Positions 13,721 through 51,604 of a DNA stretch of 64,000 nt are shown one piece after another. Every line of letters begins with the position of its first letter. Positions within the stretch are counted from its first letter, which is position 1. The notes under the pieces were generated by a model. The model was not told the DNA's origin, did not search any database, and saw nothing but the letters and a program-made list of their open reading frames with translations. The translations under genes were made by a program, and so were the position numbers. Origin of the DNA: Rhodosorus marinus CCMP1338 (lineage: Eukaryota > Plantae > Rhodophyta). The stretch lies in NCBI GenBank assembly GCA_029953675.1, contig JAMWBK010000004.1:1550001-1614000 (forward strand). Direction: 5' to 3'.

Positions 13721-14180
13721 TTGCAGCGAATCCGAAATGGGAGTAGAGAAGGTAGCATCGACCGCTGACCATGCATGCTTTTCCAGTGCTGGTTTATAGG
13801 CAGAATGAAATAGCGATCAGAGTGTCGATGTCGTTATGCGAATCCATACGTAATCTAAATTCGCAGGACAGCTGGCGATGAGCCTCTCATTCGAGCGGCG
13901 GGCTTCATGCTCGCACGGGTTGTTCCAAGATTCAATAGACGCTTTTATTTGCACTGCCTCAGAATCTCACAATGAATCAACAGATTTTGCAGCGAATCCG
14001 AAATGGAAGTAGACAAGGTAGCAATCGGCCACTGACCATTCATGCTTTTCTAGTGCTCTTTTGCGTAGAGAACGAAGTAGCGATCGGAGTGCCGATATCT
14101 TGGTCTCGACTCCATACGTAATCCAAATTCGCCGGACATCTGGGGGTACTCCCATTCGAGCGGCGGGCTCTATGCTTGCA
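13721..14180. repeat. Diverged tandem duplication of about 195 bp (13721-13915 and 13987-14180)
   Basis: Collinear shared blocks TTGCAGCGAATCCGAAATGG, CATGCTTTTC, TCCATACGTAATC and CATTCGAGCGGCGGGCT. Confidence 0.9.
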
Positions 14181-16006
14181 ATGGATGTGCAAGAGACCAT
14201 CAAAAAGGTCCAGAACAAGTGCAAAGCAAGCACTATTCCCACGCGTGCGCCACTTCCACCACAAAACTGTCAACTAATTCCAAACAAATTGCGGACAAAT
14301 CTCATCCACTCAAGGGGAGATGTACAACGGATAGCACGACTATCCCCAGGGTGGGTTTCGTGCAAGGGGCGCACAAACATGCAGTTTTCATGGGGAAGGC
14401 ATCACATCAACAATCTAGTGATCGTGATTACTTGGAGAGGACGAGTCCTCCGAACAGCCTTGTTCGCAGAACCTAAATTTTCCGAACCAACAATCTCAAG
14501 AATCATGCATGGAAAGAGTCGACGGCGGATTCAAGTTCCCCTTAGTGCCTCAAAAACGGTGGTAATCTAATTTTATTTCCAAAATCAACGGATGAATTCG
14601 AGATATTGAATTTTTGTAATAAACTGTAATCCTCTAGAAAGTTGAAGAAGAAATTCAAATTTGTTTTTGCTTTTCTCTGCACTATCATATCGATGCATAC
14701 GTGGGAGGGGCCTGTGAAAGGCAGCACAGGGGGTCGGGCTTCTGATTGAGGGTTTTTGGAAACTTTATAAGGGGGGATATGATTCTTACGATAGGTCCTA
14801 AATTTTGATTTATTCTATTTAATTTCTTTGTGTCCTTAGCAACCCCTCTTTACCGTCGTCACTATCTTTTTTACGTTTACTACCACGGGGTGCATAACCT
14901 GATTGGAAGGAGCGCACGCCGTTTGTTGGCTTGGGGGATCACTTGATCGCAGTCTCGGCTCGTTTTGCAACACCTTTTCCGCGTGCAGGGCTAATGGTAA
15001 TCAAAAAGAAATCATGGAGATTCCGTTGCGCTCCATGCGGCATTGAAACGAAAGGACAGCACACCGCAGATATGTCCGGTCTCTACTCCTTTGGACGCAC
15101 CCCTACTGAACTGAGGAGATGAAAAAAAGGGAGGTGCTGTCATCATGCTCGGTAATCCACACTCCTCGCTCTTCTAAGTTGATATCGGCCTGGCGGGTAC
15201 CCGGGACGTAGCTAGACCTTTTGTAATGAGATACCAAAATTCAAGTAAACTGGCCGCCGTGACTTCGCCAGGATCTAATCACCATTATAGAAATATATCT
15301 TGGCATTTGTAGGTCGAGTGCTGGCATAGACCAACCCTGAATTGTCGTACCTTTTGGACACCTTCGCTCGTACAGCAAAAACGTTGACGCCTCAGCTGAC
15401 GGTTCTCTGCACCGTTAGCCCTTGTTGCACAGCGAGGGACTGTAAAATACTTGCGAGCTGTGCGAAATAGCGCCAGAATTGTTCAATCCAGATTTAGAAG
15501 CGCAAGCAGTTTGGGTGACTCATACCCATTTCGCGTATGCCCATGATTGATGAAGTGGCAAGACTTCAGAGCTTTTGTCAGGAGCGGAGCGGAACACTGT
15601 ATGATCCCGAGCTATCAATAATCCGTCCGACGTCAGCGGATTGGGTGAGAAAGCCTTCAATTTGGAAAAACCTAGTTCGCATCCGGAGTCGAATTTAACA
15701 ATCTCAGTCATTCTCGCAAATGGAGAAAGATCTCCATGCTGCAGGGGGTTCAAACGAGCCTTTAGACGGTTCCTGGATGGTCGAGAAATTTTGCACTGTT
15801 CCAAGCGTGCTATCCCCTATCTCGCTTCCAATCGGACTGACTTTAAAATCCTGCCTTCAAGATCGCAGAGTATACCAACCACCACTACCACCACAACCAC
15901 GGTATAAAGAGCTTAGCATCTCCACAAGTCGAGGTGGGGCTCTTGTCTGCGCTACCCCTACTTGTGGGCCTTACATATGAGTGCCATCGGCAGCAGCTAC
16001 GCCACA

Positions 16007-17293
16007 ATGACGGGGAAGATCTTGATTTCTGTATTTGCATGCTTGTTTCTGATTATTCAGACAGCCGCGTTCCCAACGCAGCACCGACAGCATTATGCCG
16101 ATCATCAAGAAGGAGAAGGGATTGCGCTTAGGCTGAACAACTCAACAATCGAACGCATGCCTCCCAGGAACGAAACTGGAGGAGGTCACTGGAGACGCCC
16201 AGGGCACAATATCACTACCGACGGCATGCCTCCCAGGAATGAAACTGGAGGAGGTCACTGGAGACGCCCAGGACACAATAGCACTCCCGACGGCATGCCT
16301 CCCAGGAATGAAACTGGAGGAGGTCACTGGAGACGCCCAGGATACAATAGCACTACCGACGGCATGCCTCCCAGGAATGAAACTGGAGGAGGTCACTGGA
16401 GACGCCCAGGACACAATAGCACTACCGACGGCATGCCTCCCAGGAATGAAACTGGAGGAGGTCACTGGAGACGCCCAGGACACAATAGCACTACCGACGG
16501 CATGCCTCCCAGGAATGAAACTGGAGGAGGTCACTGGAGACGCCCAGGATGCAATAGCACTACCGACGGCGTGCCTCCCAGGAATGAAACTGGAGGAGGT
16601 CACTGGAGACGCCCAGGACACAATAGCACTACCGACGGCGTGCCACTCAGGAATGAAACTGGAGGAGGTCACTGGAGACGCCCAGGATGCAATAGCACTA
16701 CCGACGGCGTGCCTCCCAGGAATGAAACTGGAGGAGGTCACTGGAGACGCCCAGGATACAATAGCACTAGCGACGGCATGCCTCCCAGGAATGAAACTGG
16801 AGGAGGTCACTGGAGACGCCCAGGACACAATAGCACTACCGACGGCATGCCTCCCAGGAATGAAACTGGAGGAGGTCACTGGAGACGCCCAGGACACAAT
16901 AGCACTACCGACGGCGTGCCTCCCAGGAATGAAACTGGAGGAGGTCACTGGAGACGCCCAGGATGCAATAGCACTACCGACGGCGTGCCTCCCAGGAATG
17001 AAACTGGAGGAGGTCACTGGAGACGCCCAGGAGACAATAGCACTACCGACGGCATGCCTCCCAGGAATGAAACTGGAGGAGGTCACTGGAGACGCCCAGG
17101 AGACAATAGCACTACCAACGGCATGCACCCTCGAAACGAAACTGACAGATATCCCAGAGGACCAGAGGGTAGGCGGCCCCCATATGCCCCAGGTGCATGG
17201 CGAAGACAAATCTGTGGTGAGATCATATCCCACTCCCCGAGCCTGTGCGAGATCGCGATTGTTAGCAGATTCTGCCCAGCTGAATGCGCTTAA
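16007..17293 (+). CDS. Secreted tandem-repeat glycoprotein (signal peptide plus 14 x 23-aa repeats)
   Basis: ATG at 16007 (gccacaATG) starts MTGKILISVFACLFLIIQTAA-FP, a typical signal peptide; open frame to 17293. The C-terminus may be altered by a short intron near 17217. Confidence 0.8.
   Translation: MTGKILISVFACLFLIIQTAAFPTQHRQHYADHQEGEGIALRLNNSTIERMPPRNETGGGHWRRPGHNITTDGMPPRNETGGGHWRRPGHNSTPDGMPPRNETGGGHWRRPGYNSTTDGMPPRNETGGGHWRRPGHNSTTDGMPPRNETGGGHWRRPGHNSTTDGMPPRNETGGGHWRRPGCNSTTDGVPPRNETGGGHWRRPGHNSTTDGVPLRNETGGGHWRRPGCNSTTDGVPPRNETGGGHWRRPGYNSTSDGMPPRNETGGGHWRRPGHNSTTDGMPPRNETGGGHWRRPGHNSTTDGVPPRNETGGGHWRRPGCNSTTDGVPPRNETGGGHWRRPGDNSTTDGMPPRNETGGGHWRRPGDNSTTNGMHPRNETDRYPRGPEGRRPPYAPGAWRRQICGEIISHSPSLCEIAIVSRFCPAECA
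16151..17143 (+). repeat. Coding minisatellite: 14 full 69-bp units plus a partial unit
   Basis: Unit encodes DG(M/V)PPRNETGGGHWRRPG(H/Y/C/D)NSTT; 16151 + 14 x 69 = 17117, where the partial unit starts. Confidence 0.98.
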
Positions 17294-21677: not shown

Positions 21678-22717
21678 AAGAAACCGACGCTAATACGACA
21701 CTGGAGCATCCTTCGTGTCGCGCCCTCACTGCATCTAAACAATCAAGTCAGGATTATCTTACACAAGCAATAAACCACCTCTGCCATTGAAAGCTACAAG
21801 CAAATTACCAAGTGGACACGAAGCACCACGCGAACGTCTTGCATCCTGCAAAGACCCAAATAAAACTGCAATCGTTTTTCCACAGTGGTTGCTTGGCTGC
21901 TGTCTAAACTAAAGCTAGAACGCCGCCACGCTGACGGCTAGCATTAGATGCCCTTGAGTCTGCAAGCACAACAGTAGTATTTGTTGACGAGATGATCATG
22001 TTCAACCGACAAGCATCGATTGCTTCAAAAAATAGTTTCCCCATTGGTAGTGACTAGCAACGCAATGGGAAGTTTCGCATGTAGCCGCAAGCACGAAGCG
22101 TTGAGCATCTTCCAACCTATCCACTCGTATAGTCCACCTTCCATCGTGTCTTCTACGAGGGCGCTCAACACTACTCGAACGGGAGGAGCTAAATATTTTG
22201 CTGCTGGAAATCATCCTCTATTCCCTCGCGTAACAGCGTTGCTCTTCTTGAACAGCTCATTCAAATGGCTAGGTATTCTACGTATCATCGCTTTCAAATG
22301 ACCTATCCCCGTCTTGTCGGGTCCAAGAGCAGTACGTACGTCACAAGCAAGCGTGCCAGTTCCCAAGGGCTCTACATTCTGTTCCCCCCTCGAAATCAAG
22401 CAGTAGACCTCCCTCCGTGACATTTGAAAGTCAAAAACTTTTTGAACAAACCTTCATAAAATTAAATTATTTCTTATTCCCCAAGCCAAAGGAAAACACG
22501 TCGTTCAAACAACTGACCCTACCATTGGAGGAAAACGGATCCGTTCCAATCATTTTAAATGTTTCTACAACTTTATTGGCAAAACACTTGTTTTCCTTTG
22601 GTCTATTGGATAGAATTGTCAAAATGTTTTCTAAAACTAATTTAGATACGCTTTGCATGTTGGCTCTTTGTAAGCATATTTTCAACCCCTTTTCTTTTCA
22701 AGGCCAAACAGAGGCAC

Positions 22718-23430
22718 AGTTTCCCATCCAGAAACCGCACGCCACGAAATTCAGGGACCACGTTCAAACCCTTCTCATATTATAAAAGAAAAATACTGCC
22801 CTAAAACTTCTAAAATATTATAAATATCCTGAAGGTGGAACAATTTCTCATTGTTAGGGTGTACTCTAAAACTATGCAATTAATTTTCCATGTATAAAAA
22901 ACTCATCATCGTGTCATCGCTGGAAACCTTAGGACAGCCTGTCACTTTTCAACTGAATTCTGCTGGCTCGTTCAGAAAGAGCGTTGATTTTGATTGAGAA
23001 AAGGACGCGTGGCATTACACCATATGGAAAAGTAATATAACGCCCAAATTTATATATTTTCTGCCCCGCTTTCTTTTCTTGACGAGAGAGAGTTTCCCAT
23101 CCAGAAACCGCACGCCACCAAATCCACAGACCCACCCTCAAATCCTTCTCATATTACAAAAGAAAACATCTTGCTCCTAAAACTTCTAAAATATTGTAAA
23201 TTTCCTGGAGAGGGCACAGTTTCTCACTGCTACGGTACTTTTTAAAACTATACAATTAGTTTTCCATGCCAAAGAAAACTCTACCTCATCGTATCAGCTT
23301 AGGACAGCCTGTCACCTTCAATTGAATTCTGTTGGGCTCCTCCTGCAGGATCGACGATTTTGATGGAGAAAAGGACGCGTGGTATTTCACCATAAGCAAA
23401 AAGAATAAATAGATCAAAAGTATATATTAA
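22718..23430. repeat. Diverged non-coding tandem duplication of about 335 bp (22718-23056 and 23091-23430)
   Basis: Collinear blocks AGTTTCCCATCCAGAAACCGCACGCCAC, CCTAAAACTTCTAAAATATT, CTTAGGACAGCCTGTCAC and GAGAAAAGGACGCGTGG in both copies. Confidence 0.92.
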
Positions 23431-30654: not shown

Positions 30655-33286
30655 GACTCCAACACTGATTTACAAGACTTCATTCCCGTCGGAATGGCTG
30701 AATTTTTTATGATTCAGTGACAGCAGTACTGTTGTCAGCAGTGCGGGCGTAGACGAGCAGCATGTGAATAAGGAATCGCCGGCACCAGCCTTTGTGCGAA
30801 TCCCGCACACCGAAGCCAGCTTGACCAATCCGATCTCGTCTTTCAGTCGCAAAGCTGAGCTAACAACTCAAAAAACAGACGTTAGGAGGGTGTGCCTTAA
30901 AAACCATTATTTGCAAGACAGATCGCCACGCAGGAGCTCTGGACTAGCCGCTTGCCAATCTTGGTACCCCTCGGAATGAATTTCGAACTCGCACACGATG
31001 AACGTAGATCATCAGACGAATAAAATCCACACGGGCTTTTTCTCTCCCTGCTGGCGGGGCGCATACTATACTTTGGCTGAGCAGGGACTGTGGGCTACTA
31101 CAAGGTGCTACCTTCTAAAGATCCTAACGTTAACCTGAGAACAGCAATGCTTAATCGAATTCGACAGTAGCCTCCTGGGTTCTCATAGTAGGCCCGTGGA
31201 AAGGGATAGGAAGCGAAAACCCTATGACATGAAGGAGCCCTCAAGGGAATCATTTTAGGTCAGTTGTAGACCACGGGGAAAGAGTCCTTAGGCGGGGATC
31301 TTTTGGATCTGTCGAAAACCGCGCAAAGAGTACACAGTTGTTTCGTCGAAGCCATAGAATTAAGGGGTGAATAGTCAGATTCAACTTTGTGAGAGCGGTT
31401 CCGTATAAGTCTTGCCTTCCTGGACTGACTCTTCATGTTCCTACCGTGAAATACCAGGAGCGGACAGACTATCCATACTTTCATCCTCAAGGTGTTTTCC
31501 TCATGAATCGGCTCAAGGCTTCGTTGATGGGGAGGGGCAGGGCTAGCGTGCATCTGTCATATGTGTAGTCAAGTCGTCTCTCAAAGAGCCGACTGCATAC
31601 GAGTTTCGTGCGAGGGCTCGTTCGCAAATGTCTGATCATGAAATTGTATATTGCACCCCCTGTTGGGGAGGGATACGGCGAGGAGGTTGATAATATTTGG
31701 TTCGCCGTTTAGTGTGCTTCCTCTCGGGGCTGTAGACACTCATTCGTAACCCCGCTTGACCCCATATCAATATCTCGCCCTGGGGCACACCAGTGCATCT
31801 GCAAACGGCTTGCCGTTTTGGTGAAGACGTGATTCTCATGTGTCAAGACCAAAAGATGCTGAAACAGGTGAAAGGAGGATTCTTGGACTACCAATCAGGT
31901 CGCCTTGAGACAGTTCGTCCCCCTATATAGGCTGATGAAGTCTCCTTCGCACTCTGACAGTCTCTAGGTATCAGACAAAAACAACAAAACTCATCGTTCC
32001 CGAACCTAATTTTCCTGCCACTGTCTACGCTAAGGACCCGGCAGCGCTCTCCCCCGCCCAAAGACAAGGCGGCTTCCGTCAAAGTAGAAACAAAAACAGC
32101 ACTACATGCTGAGTCTCAGTGTACAGTAGTTCAAAGTTCGGATTTCGTGTCATCCTCGCGTTAGTCAAGGATGATTCTCAGTCCAGGGTAAACAAAGTGA
32201 GACAACCCACCCGGAGAGGAAGAGGAAGCCAGACCAAACATTCACCTGGGAAGTTCCCCGAGGCCGAGACGAAAGAGATATCTACCCTCTAAAACTAAGG
32301 CCAATCGAACCGGCGCCACAGAAGGAATTCACGAAAGACAGAGAAGCTCAGCGAATGCCCTTGGGATCCCTTCATACTGTTCTCCCAAAAGTCTGAACCG
32401 GAAAACACCTTATCCCGTTTCCCCCCCATAATGGTCTACGTCCCCCAGGAACCCCCAAATCCAATCTCATTTATCATTTTCCAATTGAAATAACATTACA
32501 TCGACCGAAGCAGTCAAAACGAAAGTATTTCACCCCCCTTCAATGCAGAATATAAACAATTCGATTAATTTAATATATAATACAAATATCATATTATTCT
32601 ATAACAAAAAATAATTAAATATTCATCTAAAGACTAAATATATTAGTTTAATACAATAAGTCTCCGGATTGAATAGCATGATTATAATTTCATATGATAT
32701 ATTTACGTATTTTATAATAATATAAAACATTTATTAATTTGTATATAATAAATAAATTATTTGCGTCAAGTGAAAATAAATTAGGCTACCAACGTAATAT
32801 TTCAATAATAGATGAGCTAGATACTTAAGTTGATAATGTTTAAATCATTTACAATAAAAATAAAGATATATGTTTTATAACTTTACTGATAGAACACAAA
32901 TAAATTGTATTAATGTAATTAATATGAAACTTATTTTATTGATATTATCATTATTATATGATATATTTGTATCAAACAAAAGAATATTTTTATTATATAT
33001 GGAATATCGTATTTTATTTATGATATTTATGTTTATTGGCATTAGCGGCTCGGGGGGGTAAGGATATTGAGGAATGGGATTGGGAAATTTTCAGGGTTGG
33101 CGGTGTCGGGGGATGTGTTCGGGAGTGTAGGGGACGGTGAATTGGTTTGGGAGTAGTTTGGGGGGTGTTGGGGGGAAGAGTGGGTGGATAATGATGGACA
33201 TGGTAATGTATATGAGGTGACTGAGTACATTTTTGAAGGGTTTGTGAAGGATTTTAGGGAAGGAGAGTAGTTAAAGAGTTTCAAAG

Positions 33287-42797: not shown

Positions 42798-43035
42798 TCT
42801 GACAAAGTGCAGAAAACGTTTGGAATGATAGCGCAGGTCCTGTTTTTCGTCGCCACCGCTTTCAAGGCATCCCGGATTGGCCTTGTTTCTTCGGTCACGG
42901 GAACGGCAGAAAAGTCTTAAGTTTCTCAAAATATTTACAACAACGAATAAACATAGTTGAATACACGTAAAATGCTACTCAGTCCTTCCTAGCCGTTCAG
43001 TCATCCCGCACGGGTTCCTCTTGCTCGCCCCGATC

Positions 43036-44298
43036 TCACCAAAGAACATAGTCTTTCGACCCAAACCGTTTAATCTTATTTTCAACGAAGTCCTTGGGAA
43101 CTCTCCGTAGCACCCTCTGCTGCTTCCGCATTCTTTCCTCTCTGTACTTCAGCGCCCCGGTATACATTTCCTTAATACCCTCCTTGCTGTACCAGTAGTC
43201 ATGGTGCAGTTGGAACTCCCGCTTCAAAACGTCTGCTTTTGCTTGTTCTGCTTGGCTCTCCTTAAGCTCAAAGTTCATTAGCGTCTTAAGAGAATCAAAG
43301 CCAAAGGTCTCTTCTGACGCTTTTACGATTTGATCCCAGGAATCGGACATGTCCTCGAGATCAGATTCGGGTACCTGCTCGTAAGGGGTCAACGGATTTG
43401 TTACGCTCGACCACAACAGTTTGAGAACAAAAGCAAAGCTTAGGAAATCGCGGTTACCTTCTCTCCAACGCTCAGTTTTGCTTCCCTTACGAGACGCTCC
43501 ATCATTGTCCCTAAGAACAGCTGGTTTTCGACACCAGAATTGTACCTTCCGGAACTCATCTTCACGATCTCTTTTTCCTTGTTAAACCCCCGGCCCGCGA
43601 TGAGCGCAACCGCATGCTTGGCAACGAAAGAAAGATCGCTTTCTCCAACATGATAAGTTGCAACCGCTATTCTATTTTCAGGATACCCAAGCTTTTCACC
43701 ATCATAGGAGAAGACCTTGAAAGTATCGAATTCAGTATACTTGAATACTTGAAGCAAATGCTTGGTGATTCTGGTGTATTCACTCTGTACATCCGAGTCC
43801 GTCAAGTCCTTCTCGATGTGGGGAGATTTCACGCCAGCGGTGTTCACAAAAATTAGAGACACTCGATCAGCGTTCTTGACCAAACTCTTCAAAATTTCGA
43901 ATCTAAACTAAAAGCAATACACAAAGCTTTTTTACCTTTTGATTTGCTTTTTCGACGACGCCAACTAACTGATCCAAAATACTATCAGCCACAGTTGTCG
44001 ACAACTGGGCTTCCTTCCTCATCCTCTCCTCCTCCTCCTTCTTCCTCGCCGCGATCACATTCTCGTCCATATCGTGTTCCCTCTTTTTCCTTAACGCTTC
44101 ATCTCTTTTTTTCCGTGCCAATTCCTCCTCATCCTCGTCCTCCAAGTTAAACAAATCAAACAACTCATCACCATCATCATCTCCATCTCCCTCCTTCTTT
44201 CCCCCACCTCCTCCGCTACTCACAAACCGCCTAGCTTCCCTACAACCCCTTCCAGCCATACCGTTCCATGACCGTCTTAACATCAATCTTAAAGCCAT
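43036..44298 (-). CDS. Hypothetical protein with a mitochondrial-type presequence and charged/coiled region, 3 exons
   Basis: MALRLMLRRSWNG...RRFVSS is an Arg-rich presequence. ORFs 43903-44403, 43440-43892 and 43036-43416 join through introns gttagt...tttag and gtaacc...gagcag. Confidence 0.7.
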
Positions 44299-44461
44299 AC
44301 CTCCCAATCCTCTTCTCCCGATCTTCAAAATAGAAACACTGTAATTCACCCCGGCAGCCACTCTTCTCCTCGGCCTTCCCTTTCCCCCCACGAACCGAGT
44401 CATCTATTAAATGGGTCACAACCTGATCTCATCGTGCCATCGTCCTCGCTCCTTTGCAAGA

Positions 44462-45792
44462 GTCGTCCATCAAGATTGATGACACTGTTCTGTGGGGAAA
44501 GGGGGTGGAGGGGGAGACTGGTTATCGTCGTCATCCATCGTGATTGATGTCGTCCTGTGGTGTCGCCCGTTCTCGCTGCCTCAGTGTCATCCGTCAAGAT
44601 TGAGGACATAGGTCGTGGGATTGTGTTGTTTTTTTTTGGCGGGGGGGGGTTGTCACCCATCAAGATTGATGACACCGTTCCGGGGGATTGGGATTTAGGG
44701 CTCTAGTTGTCATCCATCGTGATTGGTGACGTCCTGTGCAGTGGAATTGGCTGTCGATCTCAACCCCCGGTTCTCGGTCCCTCAGTGTCACCCATCAGGA
44801 TTGATGACGTCCGCCGTTGGATCTGGATTAGTTCGTATCCATCGTGATTGATGACTTCCTGTGGGGGAGATTGGCTGTAGAACTCATCCCCCGTCCTCGC
44901 TCCCTCAGTTTCATCCGTTAAGATTGATGACACCGTTGGGTGGGTGGGAGTTTGATGACTACTGGCAGATTTTGCCGGATCAACCCCCTTCATTGTATCG
45001 GACCGACCGAGTCGGTCGAAACTTACTTGAGTGGTACGATCAGCTGTTCGCGGCCATCAAGGAGGTGGATGGCGTGGCTGTGCAGAATGAACAGAAAGTA
45101 AGAAGCCTCAGATCGGCAGTCAAACGAGAGGGAGGAGCTCAGAGTCTACTCCTGTAAAACTCTGAGCGAAGCAGCAACCTCGATGTGGTGCGACCTGATC
45201 GTCATCAACTATGATGAGACGTCCGGGTCAAACCAGAGGTGCACAGGGTCGGTGGTCGCGCTCAGGAGGAACAATGGAAGCTGAACAGAATTGGCTATTG
45301 TCATCTCCATCGTGATTGATGGGCGTTCTGTTTGGGGGGGGGGTGAGGATGGTCAGATCCCCACCCCCGTCCTCTCTGTGTGGACTAGGGCTTGCGGGCT
45401 CTAGTTTTCATCTACCATGATTGATGACAAGGTGTGGCGGATACGGAACTGGGAGCTGCAGTCGCGATCTGTTATGATTGATGACAACGGGATCGTTCTT
45501 GGATAAATAGATTGTCGTTATCCCTGAGATGGATGACATCAGACTGTCCTCGTCCTGTTTGCTGTCATCCATCAAGATTGATGACGAAGCTTGATGACAG
45601 CCCAAGAACTCTGCCTGCGGGGTAGTTGAGATGCATGACAACGATAACCCCTCCCGTCCGATCGGTGGATACGATCAAGATCGCGACAACCAGGAGCATT
45701 TTTGGGACGGTGGCTTTGCTTTCATTTGTCAGTAAAAGGGCATCATTCTCATCCGGTCGGCTCGGTTGCTATCTTCCATCGATATTGATGAC
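44462..45792. repeat. Array of about 14 imperfect 22-bp palindromes GTCATCCATC-NN-GATTGATGAC in diverged spacers
   Basis: Copies start at 44462, 44530, 44586, 44652, 44709, 44787, 44834, 44910, ~45300, 45407, 45464, 45516, 45564 and 45771. The first eight and 45564 are close to consensus. Confidence 0.93.
44960..45290 (+). pseudogene. Possible frameshifted LTR-retrotransposon gag remnant inside the palindrome array
   Basis: LLEWYDQLFAAI...KVRSLRSAV...GAQSLL, then in the +1 frame KTLSEAATSMWCDLIVINYDETSGSNQ, resembling the copia gag 'TA..MW..L...Y...S..N' pattern. By-eye similarity only. Confidence 0.4.
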
Positions 45793-47264
45793 TTGATGGA
45801 ACCGCCCTAGGTGACTGCGGCTGTTGTATGCTGTGTTTGTGACATCGTAGGGATTGTTTAAGAAATCTCGGCTTCCGACATAAGGTAGGTAGTCTAAAGG
45901 CGCGCAACGCAAGACTAGCACTCAAGGGTCCCATACCGAAACATGGAAAACATCAGAGTTGGTCCATCAAACATGAAACGTCCCAAAAGCCATGTGTCGA
46001 TTTTACCGGGAATTGGTTGTGACCAGATCTGCTCGTGATGCGCCTCAGGTGTATAGAATCCGGTGAGACGGATTCTTACCCGACATGATTTTTCCGGTTA
46101 TTAACGAATAGATAGATCACCGTTTCAATGACTTACTGCACGGATCGGCCAGCTTTTTAGAAAACGGCGATTCCTTTTCAACTACCCGAAACCTGTATGA
46201 AGAATAAAACTGGGTGAAGGAAGAGCAGAACGTCTTCAGTGAATAACTGCCGTTTCATTCGGGTTCCGTCGCTGAAAGGCAATAAAGATTTTATCTTCTT
46301 CTAGTAACGCAGATAAAACAAGATCAAACCGTTTTCAATCCAACCAATGGTACAGCCTATCACGTCTTTAACTAAATCAATTGGCTTTTAGAAATAGAAC
46401 AAAAGAAATAATTACACGGGATTGTTTAATTATTATATAATTAATTATCAAATAGATCAGCCTGAAACGCAACGACTAATTACTGGTTACTGGTCGAACC
46501 AGAAAATACGTTTCTAAGACCTCCAAAAGATTTATTGTTTACTAAGCACGCACCTGACTAATATTATGTTAATTTCTTGACCAGTCGTATCGTTTAAAAC
46601 TAAAAACATAGAACCGATTTATAAGCCGACCTGATTTCTCTTGTTTTGGAAACAAATTCACATCATCAAGAATATTTTTCTAAAAAAATAGATTGCGCGG
46701 AGAAAGTCATTTTCCTAGTGCAGATATTTGTTATTTAGACGATACATACAGTGAAATTTTGGGTGAACATCGGATATAATTTCAGTTTTTAGAGGAAATG
46801 AGAGAACATAGTGTTTTAATGGACAGAATTTCTGGTGCGTTTTTTGGGTATCTTTCCGCCTTTTTTCGTTTTTTTCTCTTGGATCCCTTTTTTGCACATT
46901 TTGGCGTGCTCGGTTCCCGACGAACAGCAAAAGCCGCTGTGGGAGGAAGGATTTTATGTGAGCAAGGGCTAATAGACCGTTTCAAAGAATGGGAAGAAGG
47001 GTGTGTGCGTATGCCTGTGGGTAGTAGTGGTTACAAGAGTTAGCATATGGCCGTTTACTTGTTGAGAAGAGACTACATATGGACTTCTTCGAGGTTCCAG
47101 GGTGAAGAGGTATTTGGGGGCAGGCGAGGAGGATGAAAGGAACCGGCGAGTCCCCATTTTGTTGAGAAAAAAAGGCCGTTTTTAGGGATCCCTTGAAGTT
47201 TGTTGTTTTTGTTTTAGTGACCAAGAAGGGCGTGTACAAGGCGGAGGTGGGAGGGAGGTTCGGC

Positions 47265-47636
47265 ATGGAGTCCAGAAAAACAAGAGACTCATCAATGAGG
47301 CTGGTGGTGATACCGAAGAGACTGTCGAATGGTGCGCAGGAAAGGAGAAGAAGAACGCCGTCGATATTGCGGAGAAATAGCTCTCACAAAAGTAGCCGCT
47401 CTGACGGGAGCTTTGCGGATATGATGATAGAGGCGTCGAAGTTGTTGGATAGCTCCACACTGCAAGCGTCTTCCCAAGAGTTTGTACGAAACAATTCTTC
47501 AGATGCGTCACTGAATACCGTCATGAGCAGCCCTATCCACGCTGACAGCTGGAAGCAGAAAGATGACGACTCTATTCTAGCGAAAATGCGAGGAGCTATG
47601 CCAATCACACCACTGCCACGAATGGTTAGCTCGTAG
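47265..47636 (+). CDS. Small Ser/Arg-rich hypothetical protein (123 aa)
   Basis: ATG-started part of ORF 47193-47636, preceded by the G-rich leader seen at other genes; no recognised domain. Confidence 0.5.
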   Translation: MESRKTRDSSMRLVVIPKRLSNGAQERRRRTPSILRRNSSHKSSRSDGSFADMMIEASKLLDSSTLQASSQEFVRNNSSDASLNTVMSSPIHADSWKQKDDDSILAKMRGAMPITPLPRMVSS

Positions 47637-48485
47637 TGAAAAACTAACTTCCTCTGTTGAGAAGGTTTCTCATTCAGAATTCGTCAGAGTCGAGGGACCG
47701 TGCAACATTGCACATGTGATGCAGCACCCTTCCATTTCAAACGCAGCAAGTACGGCCTCGAAAAATTCTGGACAACGGATGGGAGCCATCTTGGACTAAT
47801 GTATTTTAAGCAATATAGATCATCGAACACTAAAACTTACAGGACTCGAGAACAACTGCTTTCATCGGGAGATATCCAAACGCATGTCCATAGAAAAAAT
47901 CCTCACCCGGTTCTATGACCTGCCTATCTATCTGACAGGTAGACGGGGTACTAGACCCCGAATACATAAATTGCAGGAGTTTTCAGTTCGTATAAGAAAA
48001 AGCAACTGAAAGAAGGCATAATCATTTGCTAAACATGCACGGTTAGTTCGTGTCAAGCAAACTTTGGCCCTGGTATTGGCTTGTCGGGGTTGTGAGCCTA
48101 GGCTCTACAGATGCACTACAGAGTCACCACTGACTACCGCTACCATGATCATCTCTTCTACCAATTCCCTGGAGAAGATCTAACCGTTCGGATTTCTACA
48201 TCATGCCCCAGCCGCAGTTTACACAATATTTCGGCTTTGCCGTTTTGATAGATGTCTCGACTATTCCAGACCCGGCGCTCCATTCAGAAAAACGCTGAAA
48301 AAAAGGCCTAAATCCGGAGGAAAGGGGTGGGGGGGTTGCCAAGCATCCGTCTTAAGGAGAAGCGTCCCAAACCTCCTTATATGCACGCACACTTTCAACT
48401 CAAGCACCCGCCAGTCCTATCTATACTCAAGAAGCGACCCCCAAACTCCAAGGACACGTACAATACAATAACTGGACATAAAGCG

Positions 48486-48678
48486 ACACGCGCAATAAAC
48501 TTATTGGTTTAAGTTCATCCCGAGGAACACGTGCAAGGTTTTGATTAGATTACAAAAGAAACACGTGCAATATTTTAACTGGTGCATATACAACACGTGG
48601 AATATTTTAACTGGTGAATATTGTTAAATATGACACGTGCAATATATTAAATGGTTAGTAACGAAGAATAGACACGTG
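48486..48678. promoter_or_regulatory. Cluster of five ACACGTG G-box/E-box motifs plus one degenerate copy
   Basis: CACGTG at 48528, 48562, 48594, 48634 and 48673; ACACGCG at 48486; about 410 bp upstream of the ATG at 49088. Confidence 0.7.
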
Positions 48679-49087
48679 CTCTGTTTTTATTAGCTATAGA
48701 AGTTTCCAGCGATGACGTGAAGTTGTCGTGGGAACTCGTTTAAGAGGCTCTGCCAATGTTTGGTGTTGTTGACGAGGAGGGTCTGTGGCTAGACAGAGTA
48801 AAGTAGCTTTTCGTCTGGGCAAGCGTAGGTGGATTTAAGTGAGGAAACGAAGAGGGTTAGTGCTCTTTGGATGTGAGGGAAGGATAGAAGGGGATTGGAG
48901 TAGAGAGAGGGTGGGAGGGGGAGTAAGTTGGGGAATATAGATCGGGCTGTTTTGTGAGGGCGGGGTTGGGTTTGTGTTTTGGTTTTGGAGGGAGGAGGAG
49001 GGAGAGGGGTAAACCGCATTTGGGAGGAGATCTGGGATATCGGTTGGTTTTTTTTCTTGTTTGTGGGGGACGTTGTGACGGTTAAAC

Positions 49088-49354
49088 ATGTCGTTTTTGG
49101 GGAGGTTAATGTCGTATCTTGCGAACGAAGTCGTTGTGAAGTCGCTGGCTAGCAGCCCTGCATTCCAGCGGTGGGCAGTAAAGACTAATCAGAGAATGGT
49201 GAGCAATGCTGAGCAGGCTGCTAAGATCACTCACGGATTGAAACAGCGGGCGCAGTCGGCAGACTTTCAGAATGAAGTCCGGCAGGGTTTGAAAGAGTTT
49301 GCAGATGCTGTCCGGAGGGACTTTTCGGGGGGAAGACCTCCGCGGGCGAAATAG
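49088..49354 (+). CDS. Small conserved protein (plant/algal 'NEVVV..LA.SPAFQR.AV' family, NCBP2AS2-like)
   Basis: 88-aa ATG ORF; the N-terminus LMSYLANEVVVKSLASSPAFQRWAVKT matches a small plant family from memory. Confidence 0.8.
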   Translation: MSFLGRLMSYLANEVVVKSLASSPAFQRWAVKTNQRMVSNAEQAAKITHGLKQRAQSADFQNEVRQGLKEFADAVRRDFSGGRPPRAK

Positions 49355-51604
49355 CTCAGCGATTAGCCATGCGTGAGAAACTTGCGTATGGTTGTATATT
49401 GTAAAATGCTTTGTGGTACTGTATTGATGACTAGGTTGTTGTTTGAAACTAGACTGCCGAGGAGTGATGTCGTTTCAAGAGCTTGATGGCTATCTCTATT
49501 TGAGTTTGAAATATGTAAATGTTATTTTGGTTTGCCAACTGTGTTCGACGCATCGCAAGTTATTTTGCGAGCACCAATACAAAAAAAAACACAGCTCTCA
49601 CGCGCTTAGAGTATCGCGCTGAATCAGAAAACATCTTTTGGGGTAGGGAAGCTGACTACTCTGGAAATAAGAGTGCGACATGGTAGTCCGGATGCATGCC
49701 CAAACTGAATTGTTACCCTGTTGCGCTAAGCGTACATTTCAAATGAGCAGTTCAGGTGTAGACCAGCGTTGAGCCTCATGCAATGAGAAGAAGCTCATCA
49801 CGAGAACCTGGGGCATACCTGTCGCTCATTGTGTCAATGGAGTTTGCCACAAGTCGCACATTCAAGTACAAGGCACTAACCGTCATGCTCTTTTTCGTGG
49901 AGTCCGTACGCTTGAGCCATTTACAAAACCACTCTGTAATCTCGTGCCCATTGGAATACAAGCAAGCGATTGCTGGTAGGCAGCTTCATCAAATGTAGGA
50001 AAGTTTTTCTTGGACGGCGTCTTTGACGGGCCATCACAGCCTACTCTAGATACTATCCCAGCTACTGGAATGTACCAAAGTGTATTCCACCAGACAGTGG
50101 TATGCGAGTGGAAAACTATGGATCAAGAGACGACTCCACCACCACATACCCTCTACAAGGGAGAAAGGTTCAATTTTCTTGGACGCTTACCTCTCAGCTA
50201 ACTAGGGGTCCGGATATGGCGTCTACAGAAGAACCTGTCCCGAAAGCGATTTGCAATTGGAACTGATCCGAAAAGGAGGGTTTCCCAAGAGCAAAAGGAA
50301 AGAAAGCTTGCTGTAAGAAAACCACTGATGTTCAGCAGGGCTGAATACGAGTCAAGAATTACATCCTCTGCTATGACACACACAAGGCTACAAAACACAC
50401 GCTCAGTGCCCAACCCTGAGGTCCTCTTCAGTTGTCAAGCGGTCGCGATCTAAGAACGACCGAAGAAGCGGGAGGTTTCCAGCCAAAACGAAGAAACCTC
50501 TTGGCGATAAAGTACAGTCGGGGGCAGTTAGCGCAGGATAGGGTTCAACAGTCTTATCCTCTCCGCTGGTCAGAGAGCGGCGTATACTGGCGTATACTAC
50601 GCCCAGCCCAACGCTTCCTTAGCCAGCTTCGTGATGTGCCAAAACACCTCGACATGGAAAACGAATCACGAAACATCGATTTTCATTCGCTGTTTCGTTT
50701 TTAAGAACGTTTTTAAGACGTTGAAAATTGTACTAAAACACGATATCCTCGCAGTTTTTTGACGGCCGGGAGGTCTCCTCTTAAGAATATCTTCAATTCA
50801 ATGAATTCTTTGTATAAATTCCTACTTGATTGGCTTATAAAATATTTATTAAAACAAACACAAATACTGTATCAGAAAAATCTACGAAAATAGACGTCCT
50901 AAAATTAAGCGGGCGAACGAATATTCTTGTTTAACAGATCGGAGGGGTTAAACGAATATACTTTTCCCGTTAAGACTGATTATTTTATCACTTAATACGA
51001 ATATTATCTTCTTGTCGATAATTAAGGGGGGTGGTTGGGGATATAGAAACAGATATTATCATTAAGTACTAAGAATTGAATGCTACAGGGTGACGTTGTG
51101 TCCATAATTTCAACTGGAAATTTGTTCCCACCCCCCGCTCCTTTTTTTTGAGCATATCATGATTTTAATTCATCTTGATAGGGGTATTGAAGTAGTATAT
51201 TATACCCCTGGGTGAGGAAGTGGTGGTATCGGAAATAGTAGTTGTTTACCTTTAATATGTTTTATATTTAATGAATATGGACGAAGTATGTTGATGAAAG
51301 AGGGTAAAAAATATTCGACTAGAATGAATTTTGAAATATCCGATTAGGGGTATTTTGTTTGGTGAGTGGCTATGGTGGAACGGGTTGTAAGGGGTGGATG
51401 GATTGATTGTATTTCTGGTGTCGATAGGATTTTGGATCGATCGAGGTGAACGTCGGAAAATAGCAGTGGCCGATGAGCTGGTATAAGACTGAGCTGGTTT
51501 GGGTTGGAGGGGGTTGGGTCAGGAGGAGGCTCTAGAGGAGTGTTCGTTTTGGTCTAGTTCTGTTCGAATCGTTGTTGTTTTTTTGAGCTTAGAATTGAAA
51601 CACG

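Follow-up and report, generated by a model that had tools for sequence, protein, structure and literature searches.

The DNA analyzed here is nuclear and comes from the unicellular red alga Rhodosorus marinus (JAMWBK010000004.1:1,550,001-1,614,000). We call this whole 64-kb stretch the window, and all coordinates are positions within it. Directly upstream of a gene for the mitochondrial ribosomal protein mS35 lies an array of a 22-bp near-palindrome, GTCATCCATC-NN-GATTGATGAC, with 13 direct copies within 44462-45792 and an inverted copy at 44399-44419. The gene is read on the minus strand from an ATG at 44298 and has three exons and two short introns. Its product was identified by a match to Pfam PF10213 (E = 1e-10) and by 91% identity to an R. 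marinus protein (P0001), and its N-terminus (MALRLMLRR...) resembles a mitochondrial presequence. The R. marinus protein itself was the sole match in a protein search for the orthologous locus. The array adjoins a 3.3-kb stretch without an annotated gene; it also adjoins a gene-free interval of 4.8 kb, the longest in the 21 kb of annotation examined. An AT-rich patch beside it has a GC content of 32-36% and is one of about 10 in the window, though not the deepest. The features are listed below with the evidence for each. A-type copies have AA or AG as their central dinucleotide, and B-type copies have GT.

43036-44298, minus strand: mS35 gene (mitochondrial small-subunit ribosomal protein; Pfam MRP-S28), NDN08_002257; annotated coordinates, sequence read
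44358-44398, minus strand: 5' leader and core-promoter segment of the mS35 gene; homologous to the G-rich spacer after copy 1, inverted
44399-44419, minus strand: 14th copy, inverted, degenerate, one base deleted, GTGACCCATTTA-ATAGATGAC; alignment, score test, sequence
44421-44461, plus strand: truncated B-type unit (..TCTCATCGTG..CGTCCTCGCTCC..), flanked by the inverted copy and copy 1; read against B-type units
44462-44483, plus strand: copy 1, A-type (central AA), GTCGTCCATCAAGATTGATGAC; pattern, weight matrix, alignment
44530-44551, plus strand: copy 2, B-type (central GT), GTCATCCATCGTGATTGATGTC; pattern, weight matrix, alignment
44586-44607, plus strand: copy 3, A-type, GTCATCCGTCAAGATTGAGGAC; pattern, weight matrix, alignment
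44652-44673, plus strand: copy 4, A-type, GTCACCCATCAAGATTGATGAC; pattern, weight matrix, alignment
44709-44730, plus strand: copy 5, B-type, GTCATCCATCGTGATTGGTGAC; pattern, weight matrix, alignment
44787-44808, plus strand: copy 6, A-type (central AG), GTCACCCATCAGGATTGATGAC; pattern, weight matrix, alignment
44834-44855, plus strand: copy 7, B-type, CGTATCCATCGTGATTGATGAC; pattern, weight matrix, alignment
44910-44931, plus strand: copy 8, A-type, TTCATCCGTTAAGATTGATGAC; pattern, weight matrix, alignment
44950-44959, plus strand: lone half-site GTTTGATGAC; half-site scan
44960-45290, no strand: unique segment of about 330 bp between the two blocks; sequence, protein and RNA family scans
45201-45208, minus strand: inverted half-site TTGATGAC, inside the unique segment; half-site scan
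45302-45323, plus strand: copy 9, the weakest full copy, CATCTCCATCGTGATTGATGGG; weight matrix, alignment
45407-45428, plus strand: copy 10 (central AT), TTCATCTACCATGATTGATGAC; pattern, weight matrix
45464-45485, plus strand: copy 11 (central AT), GCGATCTGTTATGATTGATGAC, left arm decayed, right arm perfect; weight matrix, alignment
45528-45537, plus strand: lone half-site GATGGATGAC (left-arm sequence, inverted orientation); half-site scan
45564-45585, plus strand: copy 12, exact consensus GTCATCCATCAAGATTGATGAC; pattern, weight matrix
45589-45598, plus strand: lone half-site GCTTGATGAC, just after copy 12; half-site scan
45771-45792, plus strand: copy 13, lying farthest out at 1494 bp from the ATG, ATCTTCCATCGATATTGATGAC; pattern, weight matrix

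Layout of the array and its link to the mS35 leader

We scanned the 64-kb window for GTCATCCATCNNGATTGATGAC, allowing up to 3 mismatches. This gave 12 plus-strand sites, all within 44462-45792, against 0.01 expected, and none of 100 shuffles matched the observed number. A position weight matrix found one further site, at 45464. All 13 full copies score best on the plus strand. Their central dinucleotides read, in order, AA GT AA AA GT AG GT AA in the first block and GT AT AT AA GA in the second. The array noticed in the first-pass annotation is thus real, and its tally of about 14 copies resolves into 13 full direct copies, one inverted degenerate copy, and four lone half-sites.

The spacers (for example, CCCCGTCCTCGCTCCCTCAGT and ATTGGCTGTAGAACTCA) are 25-56 bp long among the eight copies of the first block, a spacing noted earlier and confirmed by our alignment of units, and 25 to 370 bp long over the whole array. 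Spacers that belong to one type are homologous to each other, which makes the array an A-B higher-order repeat of a tandem-duplicated two-site unit of about 125-135 bp; its earlier description as a decayed repeat of this kind holds. The upstream flank of copy 10, GGGCTCTAGTT, is homologous to that of copy 5. A CRISPR array, which the first-pass annotation had already set aside, is ruled out by the eukaryotic chromosome and by spacers that are homologous to each other and of non-uniform length. No protein or RNA family matched the unique segment between the blocks, which contains two perfect short stem-loops and folds as RNA with z = -2.4; this segment may have been inserted into an older, continuous array.

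The array also extends toward the gene. The mS35 leader aligned to an array unit with a local alignment score of 37 (null, 12.5 +/- 2.6), a score reached by none of 2909 random segments of the window. Since the inverted 14th copy and its spacer form the leader of the gene, the array is physically part of the mS35 promoter. The gene that it had been reported to lie directly upstream of is mS35, and array-derived sequence covers the region between about 60 and 1494 bp upstream of the ATG rather than beginning at about 165 bp, as first proposed. Transcription of mS35 is predicted to start within 44300-44400. Within the 14th copy, some 110 nt upstream of the ATG, is a TATA-like sequence, TTTAATAG (44411 to 44404), an AT-rich stretch that may serve as the TATA box. 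The inversion breakpoint probably lies within 44421-44461. Homology reaching into the start codon amounted to an exact 12-mer match only (p about 0.04), and we therefore do not claim it.

Conservation of the motif and its spacers

We aligned the complete units of the array and compared the motif with the spacers. The motif is 87.9% identical and the spacers are 66.7% identical (Fisher p = 1e-5, a test that overstates independence here, as the three complete units share common ancestry). Gap columns number 0 in the motif and 86 in the spacers, part of this indel load lying in G-runs, where errors of the nanopore-based assembly are possible. The first-pass annotation had claimed that the motif is far better conserved than its spacers and was ready to drop the claim if a proper alignment of units found the motif no better kept; in that alignment the motif is better kept. 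Pairwise comparisons gave the same picture, with an identity of 78-86% in the motif against 48-59% in the 22-bp flanks and a background of 43% from random 22-mers; over all pairs it is 78% for the motif and 49% for the flanks.

Conservation is also structured within the motif. The arms are fixed and the central dinucleotide is free, with an information content of 0.4-0.6 bits at positions 11-12. The right arm has mismatches at 6 of 130 positions and the left arm at 24 of 130, so that the right arm is kept about four times better. In second-block copies with flanks at background identity, the right arm is still perfect. The two arms differ in one consistent way, C on the left and T on the right, as had been noted from the sequence; this pair, 7-16, does not form in any of the 13 copies. 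The proposal of a dimeric site is only half right, because GATTGATGAC is kept far better than its partner. The site appears to behave as an asymmetric element, roughly CCATC-NN-GATTGATGAC.

We observed no compensatory changes between the arms, and arm-to-arm covariation was equal to that of shuffled copies. Because of this, and because one position is mismatched in every copy, nothing maintains a hairpin. Together with unremarkable RNA folds and the lack of Rfam hits at gathering score, the absence of covariation places the constraint on the sequence itself and not on pairing. A protein-binding site would fit the fixed 22-bp length, the absence of indels, and the absence of covariation better than an RNA or DNA hairpin would.

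Possible function and origin of the array

Our preferred reading, which we hold with moderate confidence, is that the array is a nuclear cis-regulatory element, a cluster of putative sites for one sequence-specific DNA-binding protein in the mS35 promoter. In this proposal, the unit of one A-type and one B-type site would have been duplicated in tandem several times, with a second block, older or rearranged, beyond the 330-bp unique segment. One A-type unit would have been inverted beside the gene, and its spacer would now supply the 5' leader. The spacers would since have drifted through substitutions and many indels, and the 22-bp site, above all its better-kept core and right arm, would have been kept under purifying selection for its recognition, as double-stranded DNA, by a protein. 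The outcome would be a stack of 14 putative binding sites that extends over 1.5 kb upstream and passes into the promoter of the gene. So many close sites could give high local occupancy or cooperative binding and, through it, strong or switch-like control of transcription. From the sequence we infer that a protein binds, that its target is mS35 rather than an unannotated plus-strand transcript, and the direction of the effect. Our results partly support the inference of the first-pass annotation that selection preserves a dimeric protein-binding site.

Site clusters near promoters do occur in this genome, as a second small array, of another palindrome (5 x CACGTG) unrelated to the motif, lies upstream of the next gene. 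An unbiased scan of the window for locally repeated 8-mers returned only CACGTG as comparable, the rest being AT-rich noise or a coding repeat, and the motif was found in no other promoter of the 64-kb window. As counterpoints to a regulatory role, 14 sites in 1.5 kb far exceed the apparent need of a housekeeping mitoribosomal gene, and 13 of the 14 units point away from it.

A TALE-class homeodomain protein and, in view of the outward-facing ATGAC ends, a bZIP-type factor are candidates only for the putative binding protein. Red algae possess a single KNOX-Red1 together with one PBX-like TALE protein (PBX-Red), which are predicted to heterodimerize (PMC6219170). Among the aligned copies, 10 of 13 right arms close with TGAC and 6 of 13 left arms open with GTCA; 5 copies contain an exact TGATTGAT and 1 contains TGATGGAT. 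The TALE site proposed in the first-pass annotation stands as far as this TGAC core goes. However, the canonical PBX-MEIS decamer TGATTGACAG is absent from the 13 aligned copies, as is TGATTGAC, and the first T of TGATNNAT, on which the proposal was based, lies within the central dinucleotide, where the motif is least conserved.

The array could instead have arisen in the mitochondrion. The minicircles of R. marinus (OK643888-OK643898, ON716284, and OP146131) have a noncoding constant region with tandem repeats and, presumably, the replication origin (PMC10250338). Many insertions of this repeat-rich DNA are present in the nucleus, and the NUMT fraction ranks first in a set of 14 red algae (PMC10250338). 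If the array were such an insertion, its palindromes would be putative sites of a mitochondrial replication or segregation protein, and the mitochondrion would be where their conservation was shaped. Two repeat blocks around a unique segment do resemble the described layout of the constant-region repeats. However, the described constant regions are near-identical, with long exact repeats (PMC10250338), whereas the units here are 60-85% alike and their longest shared stretches are about 20 nt. Neutral decay after insertion would also hit motif and spacer equally, and this was not observed. The array has no sharp proximal edge but grades through truncated and inverted units into the mS35 leader, and a six-frame scan found no mitochondrial coding fragment beside it. 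Among 5.8 billion predicted proteins, including assemblies of R. marinus reads, there was no ORF like any array frame. The motif is not printed in the accessible part of the genome paper's supplements, where the primers target coding regions only. We consider a mitochondrial origin, which was missing from the earlier list of interpretations, to be unlikely. A mobile element is a further candidate. The plant Ac/Ds and En/Spm elements are well known for carrying short motifs that bind transposase in subterminal arrays, and the motif could be a transposase or integrase site, subterminal or LTR-like, in a fragment of such an element or of an "unclassified" interspersed repeat. Unclassified repeats make up 4% of the R. 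marinus genome, and the 3.3 kb next to the array would be compatible with this origin. DNA transposons, however, make up only 0.03% of the genome and are all hAT, with no En/Spm or Mutator. We found no bracketing terminal inverted repeats (43000-50000) or long direct repeats and no mirror-image array at the opposite end (the CACGTG array is unrelated). Neither the array nor the neighboring 3.3 kb occurs a second time in the 64-kb window. There was no transposase, reverse transcriptase, or integrase domain in a six-frame Pfam scan of 44300-49090 (nothing at E <= 1), and no related ORF in the protein collection. With no terminal inverted repeats, no coding remnant in six frames, and so few DNA transposons, the transposase reading of the first-pass annotation loses its footing, and we regard a mobile element as quite unlikely.

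A conserved box within a diverged higher-order repeat, as found here, is also the pattern of the CENP-B box, and the array might be a structural element (centromere-associated, origin-like, or a boundary) with a dedicated protein that reads the box as CENP-B does. The end of copy 13 lies 178 bp away from the exact midpoint of the 3,191,941-bp chromosome-scale contig, and the array borders the longest gene-free interval noted above. The midpoint coincidence was spotted post hoc, however, and the array is just 1.4 kb long and fused to a gene promoter. Its AT-rich surroundings are not distinctive, and centromeres are not discussed in the genome paper. We regard a structural role as very unlikely. 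(A giant-palindrome assembly artifact at the contig midpoint was rejected because there is no long inverted repeat around window position 45970.) The array might also simply be a neutral minisatellite, whose motif seems conserved because G-rich homopolymer spacers mutate or are misassembled faster. Local tandem duplications are common in the intergenic DNA of the window (13.7, 22.7, and 30.5 kb), and the spacers contain long G and T runs prone to slippage and nanopore errors. But substitutions alone, with indels ignored, still differ (88% versus 67% identity, p = 1e-5), and neither perfect right arms beside flanks of random-level identity nor the contrast of fixed arms and free center fits such a bias. 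We find this explanation highly improbable. Least probable of all, and extremely so, is that the array acts as RNA, either as hairpins processed to small RNAs or as a cluster of C/D-box snoRNA-like genes. Every copy can be drawn as a short stem, the right arm holds UGAUGA, matching the C-box core, and the unique segment folds somewhat better than shuffles. Yet pairing between the arms is no better than in shuffles, the hairpins have ordinary energies on either strand, one of eight excepted, and the plus-strand spacers contain no CUGA D-box. No Rfam family reached its gathering score, the best hit of a permissive search having 31.6 bits against a threshold of 230 bits.

We also searched for the array elsewhere. 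A 665-residue concatenation of all stop-free array frames had no match at E <= 1 in a protein search, and exact look-ups of the two longest array ORFs in public assemblies recorded nothing. A blastn search of a plasmid collection with the array gave no match, and a literature search for the motif string returned only primers or unrelated sequences. Two right arms at array spacing were found at at least 120 loci in JGI metagenomes and at 32 in IMG/VR viral contigs, and we rejected them all as chance pairs or unrelated repeats. The extended motif was present in only two of the loci listed: L033, which is a GC-rich bacterial coding repeat, and L056, an AT-rich repeat whose core is different.

Significance and comparison with known systems

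To our knowledge, almost nothing is known about the cis-regulatory DNA of red algae. The array is a clean natural case in which a putative binding site is marked by its survival amid surrounding decay, and the conserved 22-bp site is a ready-made probe for pulling out its putative binder. The mitochondrial genome of R. marinus consists of high-copy minicircles, most of its ribosomal protein genes have moved to the nucleus, and the array adjoins a mitoribosomal gene. If the site were common to other nuclear genes for mitochondrial proteins or to minicircles, it would offer a handle on nucleus-mitochondrion coordination; if it were unique to the mS35 locus, it would be a neat case of a promoter that arose through tandem duplication. 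A bolder idea, and a very improbable one, is that the array is the landing pad of a lineage-specific nucleus-mitochondria system. Either a palindrome that organizes the minicircle constant regions would have been co-opted through a NUMT into the mS35 promoter, or there would be one structural site per chromosome, a version suggested by the position midway along a chromosome-scale contig. In both cases, a new class of red-algal chromosomal element would be defined by a 22-bp box that one protein reads.

As a putative regulatory array, the locus can be set beside several known systems. The yeast GAL1-GAL10 UAS has four 17-bp palindromes bound by Gal4 and, like the array, consists of repeated palindromic sites upstream of a gene, kept while their spacing and spacers are free. 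Here, however, there are 14 sites in 1.5 kb rather than a handful in about 100 bp, the origin by tandem duplication of a two-site unit is plain, and the factor is putative. The 60/81-bp enhancer repeats of the Xenopus rDNA intergenic spacer, which also has spacer promoters, have sequence in common with the promoter and work as stacked modules for factor binding. The homology of the mS35 leader to an array unit is a similar case of upstream tandem repeats sharing promoter sequence. The Xenopus repeats serve Pol I, are near-identical, and are oriented with the promoter, whereas the units here have decayed, the proximal one is inverted, and the polymerase is presumably Pol II.

In alpha satellite, the CENP-B box likewise stays intact as a short protein-binding box in the diverged monomers of a higher-order repeat, but over hundreds of kilobases at centromeres, in contrast to the 1.4 kb fused to a promoter here. 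Iterons and family-of-repeats arrays at plasmid and episome origins, such as that of Epstein-Barr virus oriP, bound by EBNA1 dimers, are direct arrays of dimer-type palindromes with loosely conserved spacers, as is this array. They serve extrachromosomal replication and segregation, whereas the array is on a 3.2-Mb chromosome beside a promoter, and the analogy is relevant only if a minicircle origin is confirmed. The composite sites of TALE proteins (PBX-MEIS TGATTGACAG and PBX-HOX TGATNNAT in animals, and KNOX/BELL TGAC pairs in plants) are alike in that the arms here end in TGAC/GTCA and contain overlapping TGAT/TGAC units; in Chlamydomonas, the TALE-type sites are ZYRE and CGtGACATGaCC (PMC4889651). 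The array differs from them in its missing canonical decamer and in its half-sites of 10-11 bp, two of which face each other. With sites that are clustered, under apparent constraint, and located in a promoter, the array would belong to a kind already known, the homotypic cluster of transcription factor sites or tandem-repeat upstream element.

Constraint on the motif

The product of the gene adjoining the array belongs to the MRP-S28 family (Pfam PF10213). After splicing, it is 91% identical to its sole database match, 'hypothetical protein NDN08_002257 [Rhodosorus marinus]', whose UniRef name is small-subunit mitoribosomal protein. NDN08_002257 (the mS35 gene) is encoded on JAMWBK010000004.1 (3,191,941 bp; assembly GCA_029953675.1). 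Its annotated coordinates place each window position at that value plus 1,550,000 in the record. The window is therefore nuclear DNA from a unicellular member of the Stylonematophyceae, a class of red algae. The R. marinus genome has 31.2 Mb, 8392 genes, 49% GC, and 15% repeats; nearly all of the repeats are LINEs, and DNA transposons make up 0.03% (PMC10250338).

The first-pass annotation had described a recurring palindrome in this region. We searched with its motif, allowing up to three mismatches, and found 12 plus-strand sites, all within 44462-45792, against a chance expectation of 0.01. A weight matrix built from the copies added one site, at 45464, and scored every copy higher on the plus strand than on the minus strand. 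The array consists of direct repeats of a near-palindrome, in one orientation throughout. Scanning the window gave no above-noise matrix score outside the cluster. A scan for just the right arm (TTGATGAC, or GATTGATGAC allowing one mismatch) likewise showed enrichment in the array and nowhere else in the window, and added four lone half-sites inside it. Spacers in the first block (copies 1 to 8) measured 46, 34, 44, 35, 56, 25, and 54 bp, matching the 25-56 bp read earlier. The palindrome array is real and significant.

The motif had also been described as better conserved than its spacers, and this was borne out. Column identity was 87.9% in the motif versus 66.7% in the spacers of three complete units (Fisher p = 1e-5, for aligned units that have common ancestry), with 0 versus 86 gap columns. 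Some spacer indels fall in G-runs, where nanopore-based assembly could be wrong; the difference holds on substitutions alone. Across all 78 copy pairs, the motif was 78% identical, compared with 49% for the 22 bp on each side and 43% for random 22-mers. Constraint acts on the motif and not on the spacers. Mismatches to the consensus occurred at 6 of 130 right-arm positions and 24 of 130 left-arm positions, and information content was lowest at the central dinucleotide and positions 1-5. CCATC-NN-GATTGATGAC is the form that best describes the conserved element.

Duplication history and the mS35 promoter

Copies of like central dinucleotide have homologous flanks. After B-type copies (central GT), the sequence continues with GTCCTGTG...ATTGGCTGT...CCCCGTYCTCGSTCCCTCAGT; after A-type copies (central AA or AG), it continues with ACYGTTC...GGGG... 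and later GGGCTCTAGTT. The array therefore arose by tandem duplication of a two-site unit of ~125-135 bp, and the A-B higher-order repeat proposed in the first pass is upheld. The second block (45302-45792) has recognisable flank pieces in common with the first (families D3 and D8). The ~330 bp between the blocks is unique sequence, and we found no protein or RNA family match in it. Other local tandem duplications are present within the window, and a scan of its locally repeated motifs found no other many-copy duplication with a conserved core.

Two of these duplications are decayed, non-coding, and two-copy: one at 22711-23428 (370-bp unit, 78% identity) and one at 13721-14188 (267-bp unit, ~80-95% identity). 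On this evidence, R. marinus intergenic regions often undergo local tandem duplication. Elsewhere, 14 copies of a 69-bp tandem repeat (16155-17126, 96% identity) lie within long ORFs on both strands (e.g., 15962-17293, plus strand). This is probably a coding repeat, its period equalling 23 codons.

On the minus strand, 44419 to 44399 reads GTGACCCATTTA-ATAGATGAC, a degenerate array copy in inverted orientation, and the ~40 nt after it (TCGGTTCGTGGGGGGAAAGGGAAGG...) align to the spacer following copy 1. The local score of this alignment was 37, against a null of 12.5 +/- 2.6, and 0 of 2909 random segments reached 37. The homology with the copy-1 spacer extends to within ~60 nt of the start codon (44298), so the mS35 leader is made of an inverted array unit. 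The transcription start probably lies within that unit as well. That the array is physically part of the mS35 gene promoter is a new finding. The decayed inverted motif contains an AT-rich TTTAATAG, ~110 nt upstream of the ATG, that may be a TATA-like element. A truncated B unit seems to make up the 41 bp that separate copy 1 from the inverted copy. Further into the gene, roughly one unit length past the inverted copy, codons 3-6 (L-R-L-M) in the mS35 presequence consist of a 12-mer, TTAAGATTGATG (44283-44294, minus strand), that matches copy 8 exactly across its centre and right arm. The start of the coding sequence could also be array-derived on the strength of this match, which is of marginal significance (p ~0.04) and on which we do not build.

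RNA and protein readings of the motif

We rejected a hairpin reading, since pairing and covariation were at the shuffled level and pair 7-16 never formed. In the alignment of 13 copies, the ten arm-to-arm pairs were formed in 77.7% of cells versus 77.4% after shuffling, the covariation score equalled the shuffled mean, and pair 7-16 was mismatched in 13/13 copies. Single-copy RNA folds were no better than shuffles in 7/8 cases. The array had no Rfam match at gathering score, and a permissive scan returned only noise. The right arm contains UGAUGA, and no CUGA D-box was found in the plus-strand spacers. A protein that reads double-stranded DNA would be expected to constrain the letters themselves, at a fixed length of 22 bp.

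TALE homeodomain dimers had been put forward as candidates for such a protein. Red algae have one KNOX-Red1 and one PBX-like TALE protein, predicted to heterodimerise (PMC6219170), and in Chlamydomonas a TGAC/YGAC-containing element depends genetically on the KNOX/BELL pair (PMC4889651). Although each arm does end in TGAC or GTCA, none of the copies has the canonical PBX-MEIS decamer. Since the T completing TGATNNAT falls in the unconstrained central dinucleotide, exact TGATTGAT is found in only 5/13 aligned copies and TGATGGAT in 1/13. We take the TALE resemblance as a lead, not as membership. The outward-facing ATGAC ends, together with ATGACGTC (present in two copies), would be just as compatible with a bZIP half-site.

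The surrounding interval and the origin of the array

No gene is annotated from the mS35 ATG (44298) to position 49088, where an annotated 88-residue protein has its ATG, and this whole 4.8-kb interval had no Pfam match at E <= 1 in six frames. Features of the interval, and two from elsewhere in the window, are as follows.

44926-45098, plus strand: 57-codon frame opened by an ATG inside copy 8, of protein-like composition (…LLEWYDQLFAAIKEVDG…), ending at a good splice-donor sequence, CAGAAA/GTAAGA; no homologue in the protein collection
45800-48500: ~2.7 kb free of annotated genes and of sequence repeated elsewhere in the window; none of its frames matches Pfam
46798-47043, plus strand: ORF of 81 residues
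47193-47636, plus strand: ORF of 147 residues
48528-48678: second array, five CACGTG (G-box/E-box) palindromes 32-40 bp apart in a decayed ~32-bp unit (AACACGTGCAATATTTTAACTGGTG)
2271-2354: tRNA-Leu (CAA) gene, the sole Rfam or ARAGORN match in the window
32400-32900: deepest AT-rich island of the window, GC 19-25% over ~500 bp versus a window mean of 47%

The CACGTG array lies ~415-560 bp upstream of the 49088 ATG and is unrelated to the 22-bp palindrome array. Both genes bounding the interval have clusters of palindromic sites near their promoters, with a different motif for each. An unannotated transcript could lie at 45800-48500, and 13 of the 14 array units are oriented towards it.

The mitochondrial genome of R. 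marinus comprises 13 minicircles, each carrying many tandem repeats in its non-coding constant region, and GC content reaches 62% in the class (PMC10250338). Protein-binding palindromes in an origin-type array would fit well into such a region, and R. marinus has the highest fraction of nuclear mitochondrial copies (NUMTs) among 14 red algae (PMC10250338). That the array is a NUMT of minicircle DNA nevertheless has a small, if real, chance of being true. Several points count against a recent NUMT. The array units share 60-85% of their sequence and so are old, in contrast to constant regions that are described as nearly identical and as having long exact matches between repeats. Once inserted, a copy decaying neutrally would not keep its motif intact, and the proximal border is not sharp but grades into the gene leader. 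No mitochondrial coding fragment is adjacent, and no ORF like any array frame was found among 5.8 billion predicted proteins.

The 'unclassified' repeats, 4% of the genome (PMC10250338), leave some room for a mobile-element fragment. However, the array has no terminal inverted repeats or long direct repeats, no transposase or reverse transcriptase was found in six frames of the 4.8-kb interval, there is no second copy in the window and no related ORF among the predicted proteins, and DNA transposons are almost absent from the genome. A chromosomal structural element would suit an array that borders a gene-free stretch and whose last copy ends 178 bp before the exact contig midpoint (window 45970, record 1,595,970), but the array spans no more than 1.4 kb, the window has ~ten AT-rich patches of which the adjacent one is not the deepest, and centromeres are not mentioned in the genome paper (PMC10250338). 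The midpoint position, noticed after the fact, is probably a coincidence. There is no long inverted repeat around 45970, and a fold-back assembly artefact there was rejected on that ground.

The most likely reading, with about an even chance, is that the array is a homotypic cluster of putative sites for one sequence-specific DNA-binding protein, of tandem-duplication origin, under selection mainly on the right arm, and integrated in the promoter of a nuclear mitoribosomal gene. Elements of this kind are already known; the array would rise above that if it proved to be linked to the minicircles or to occur once per chromosome.
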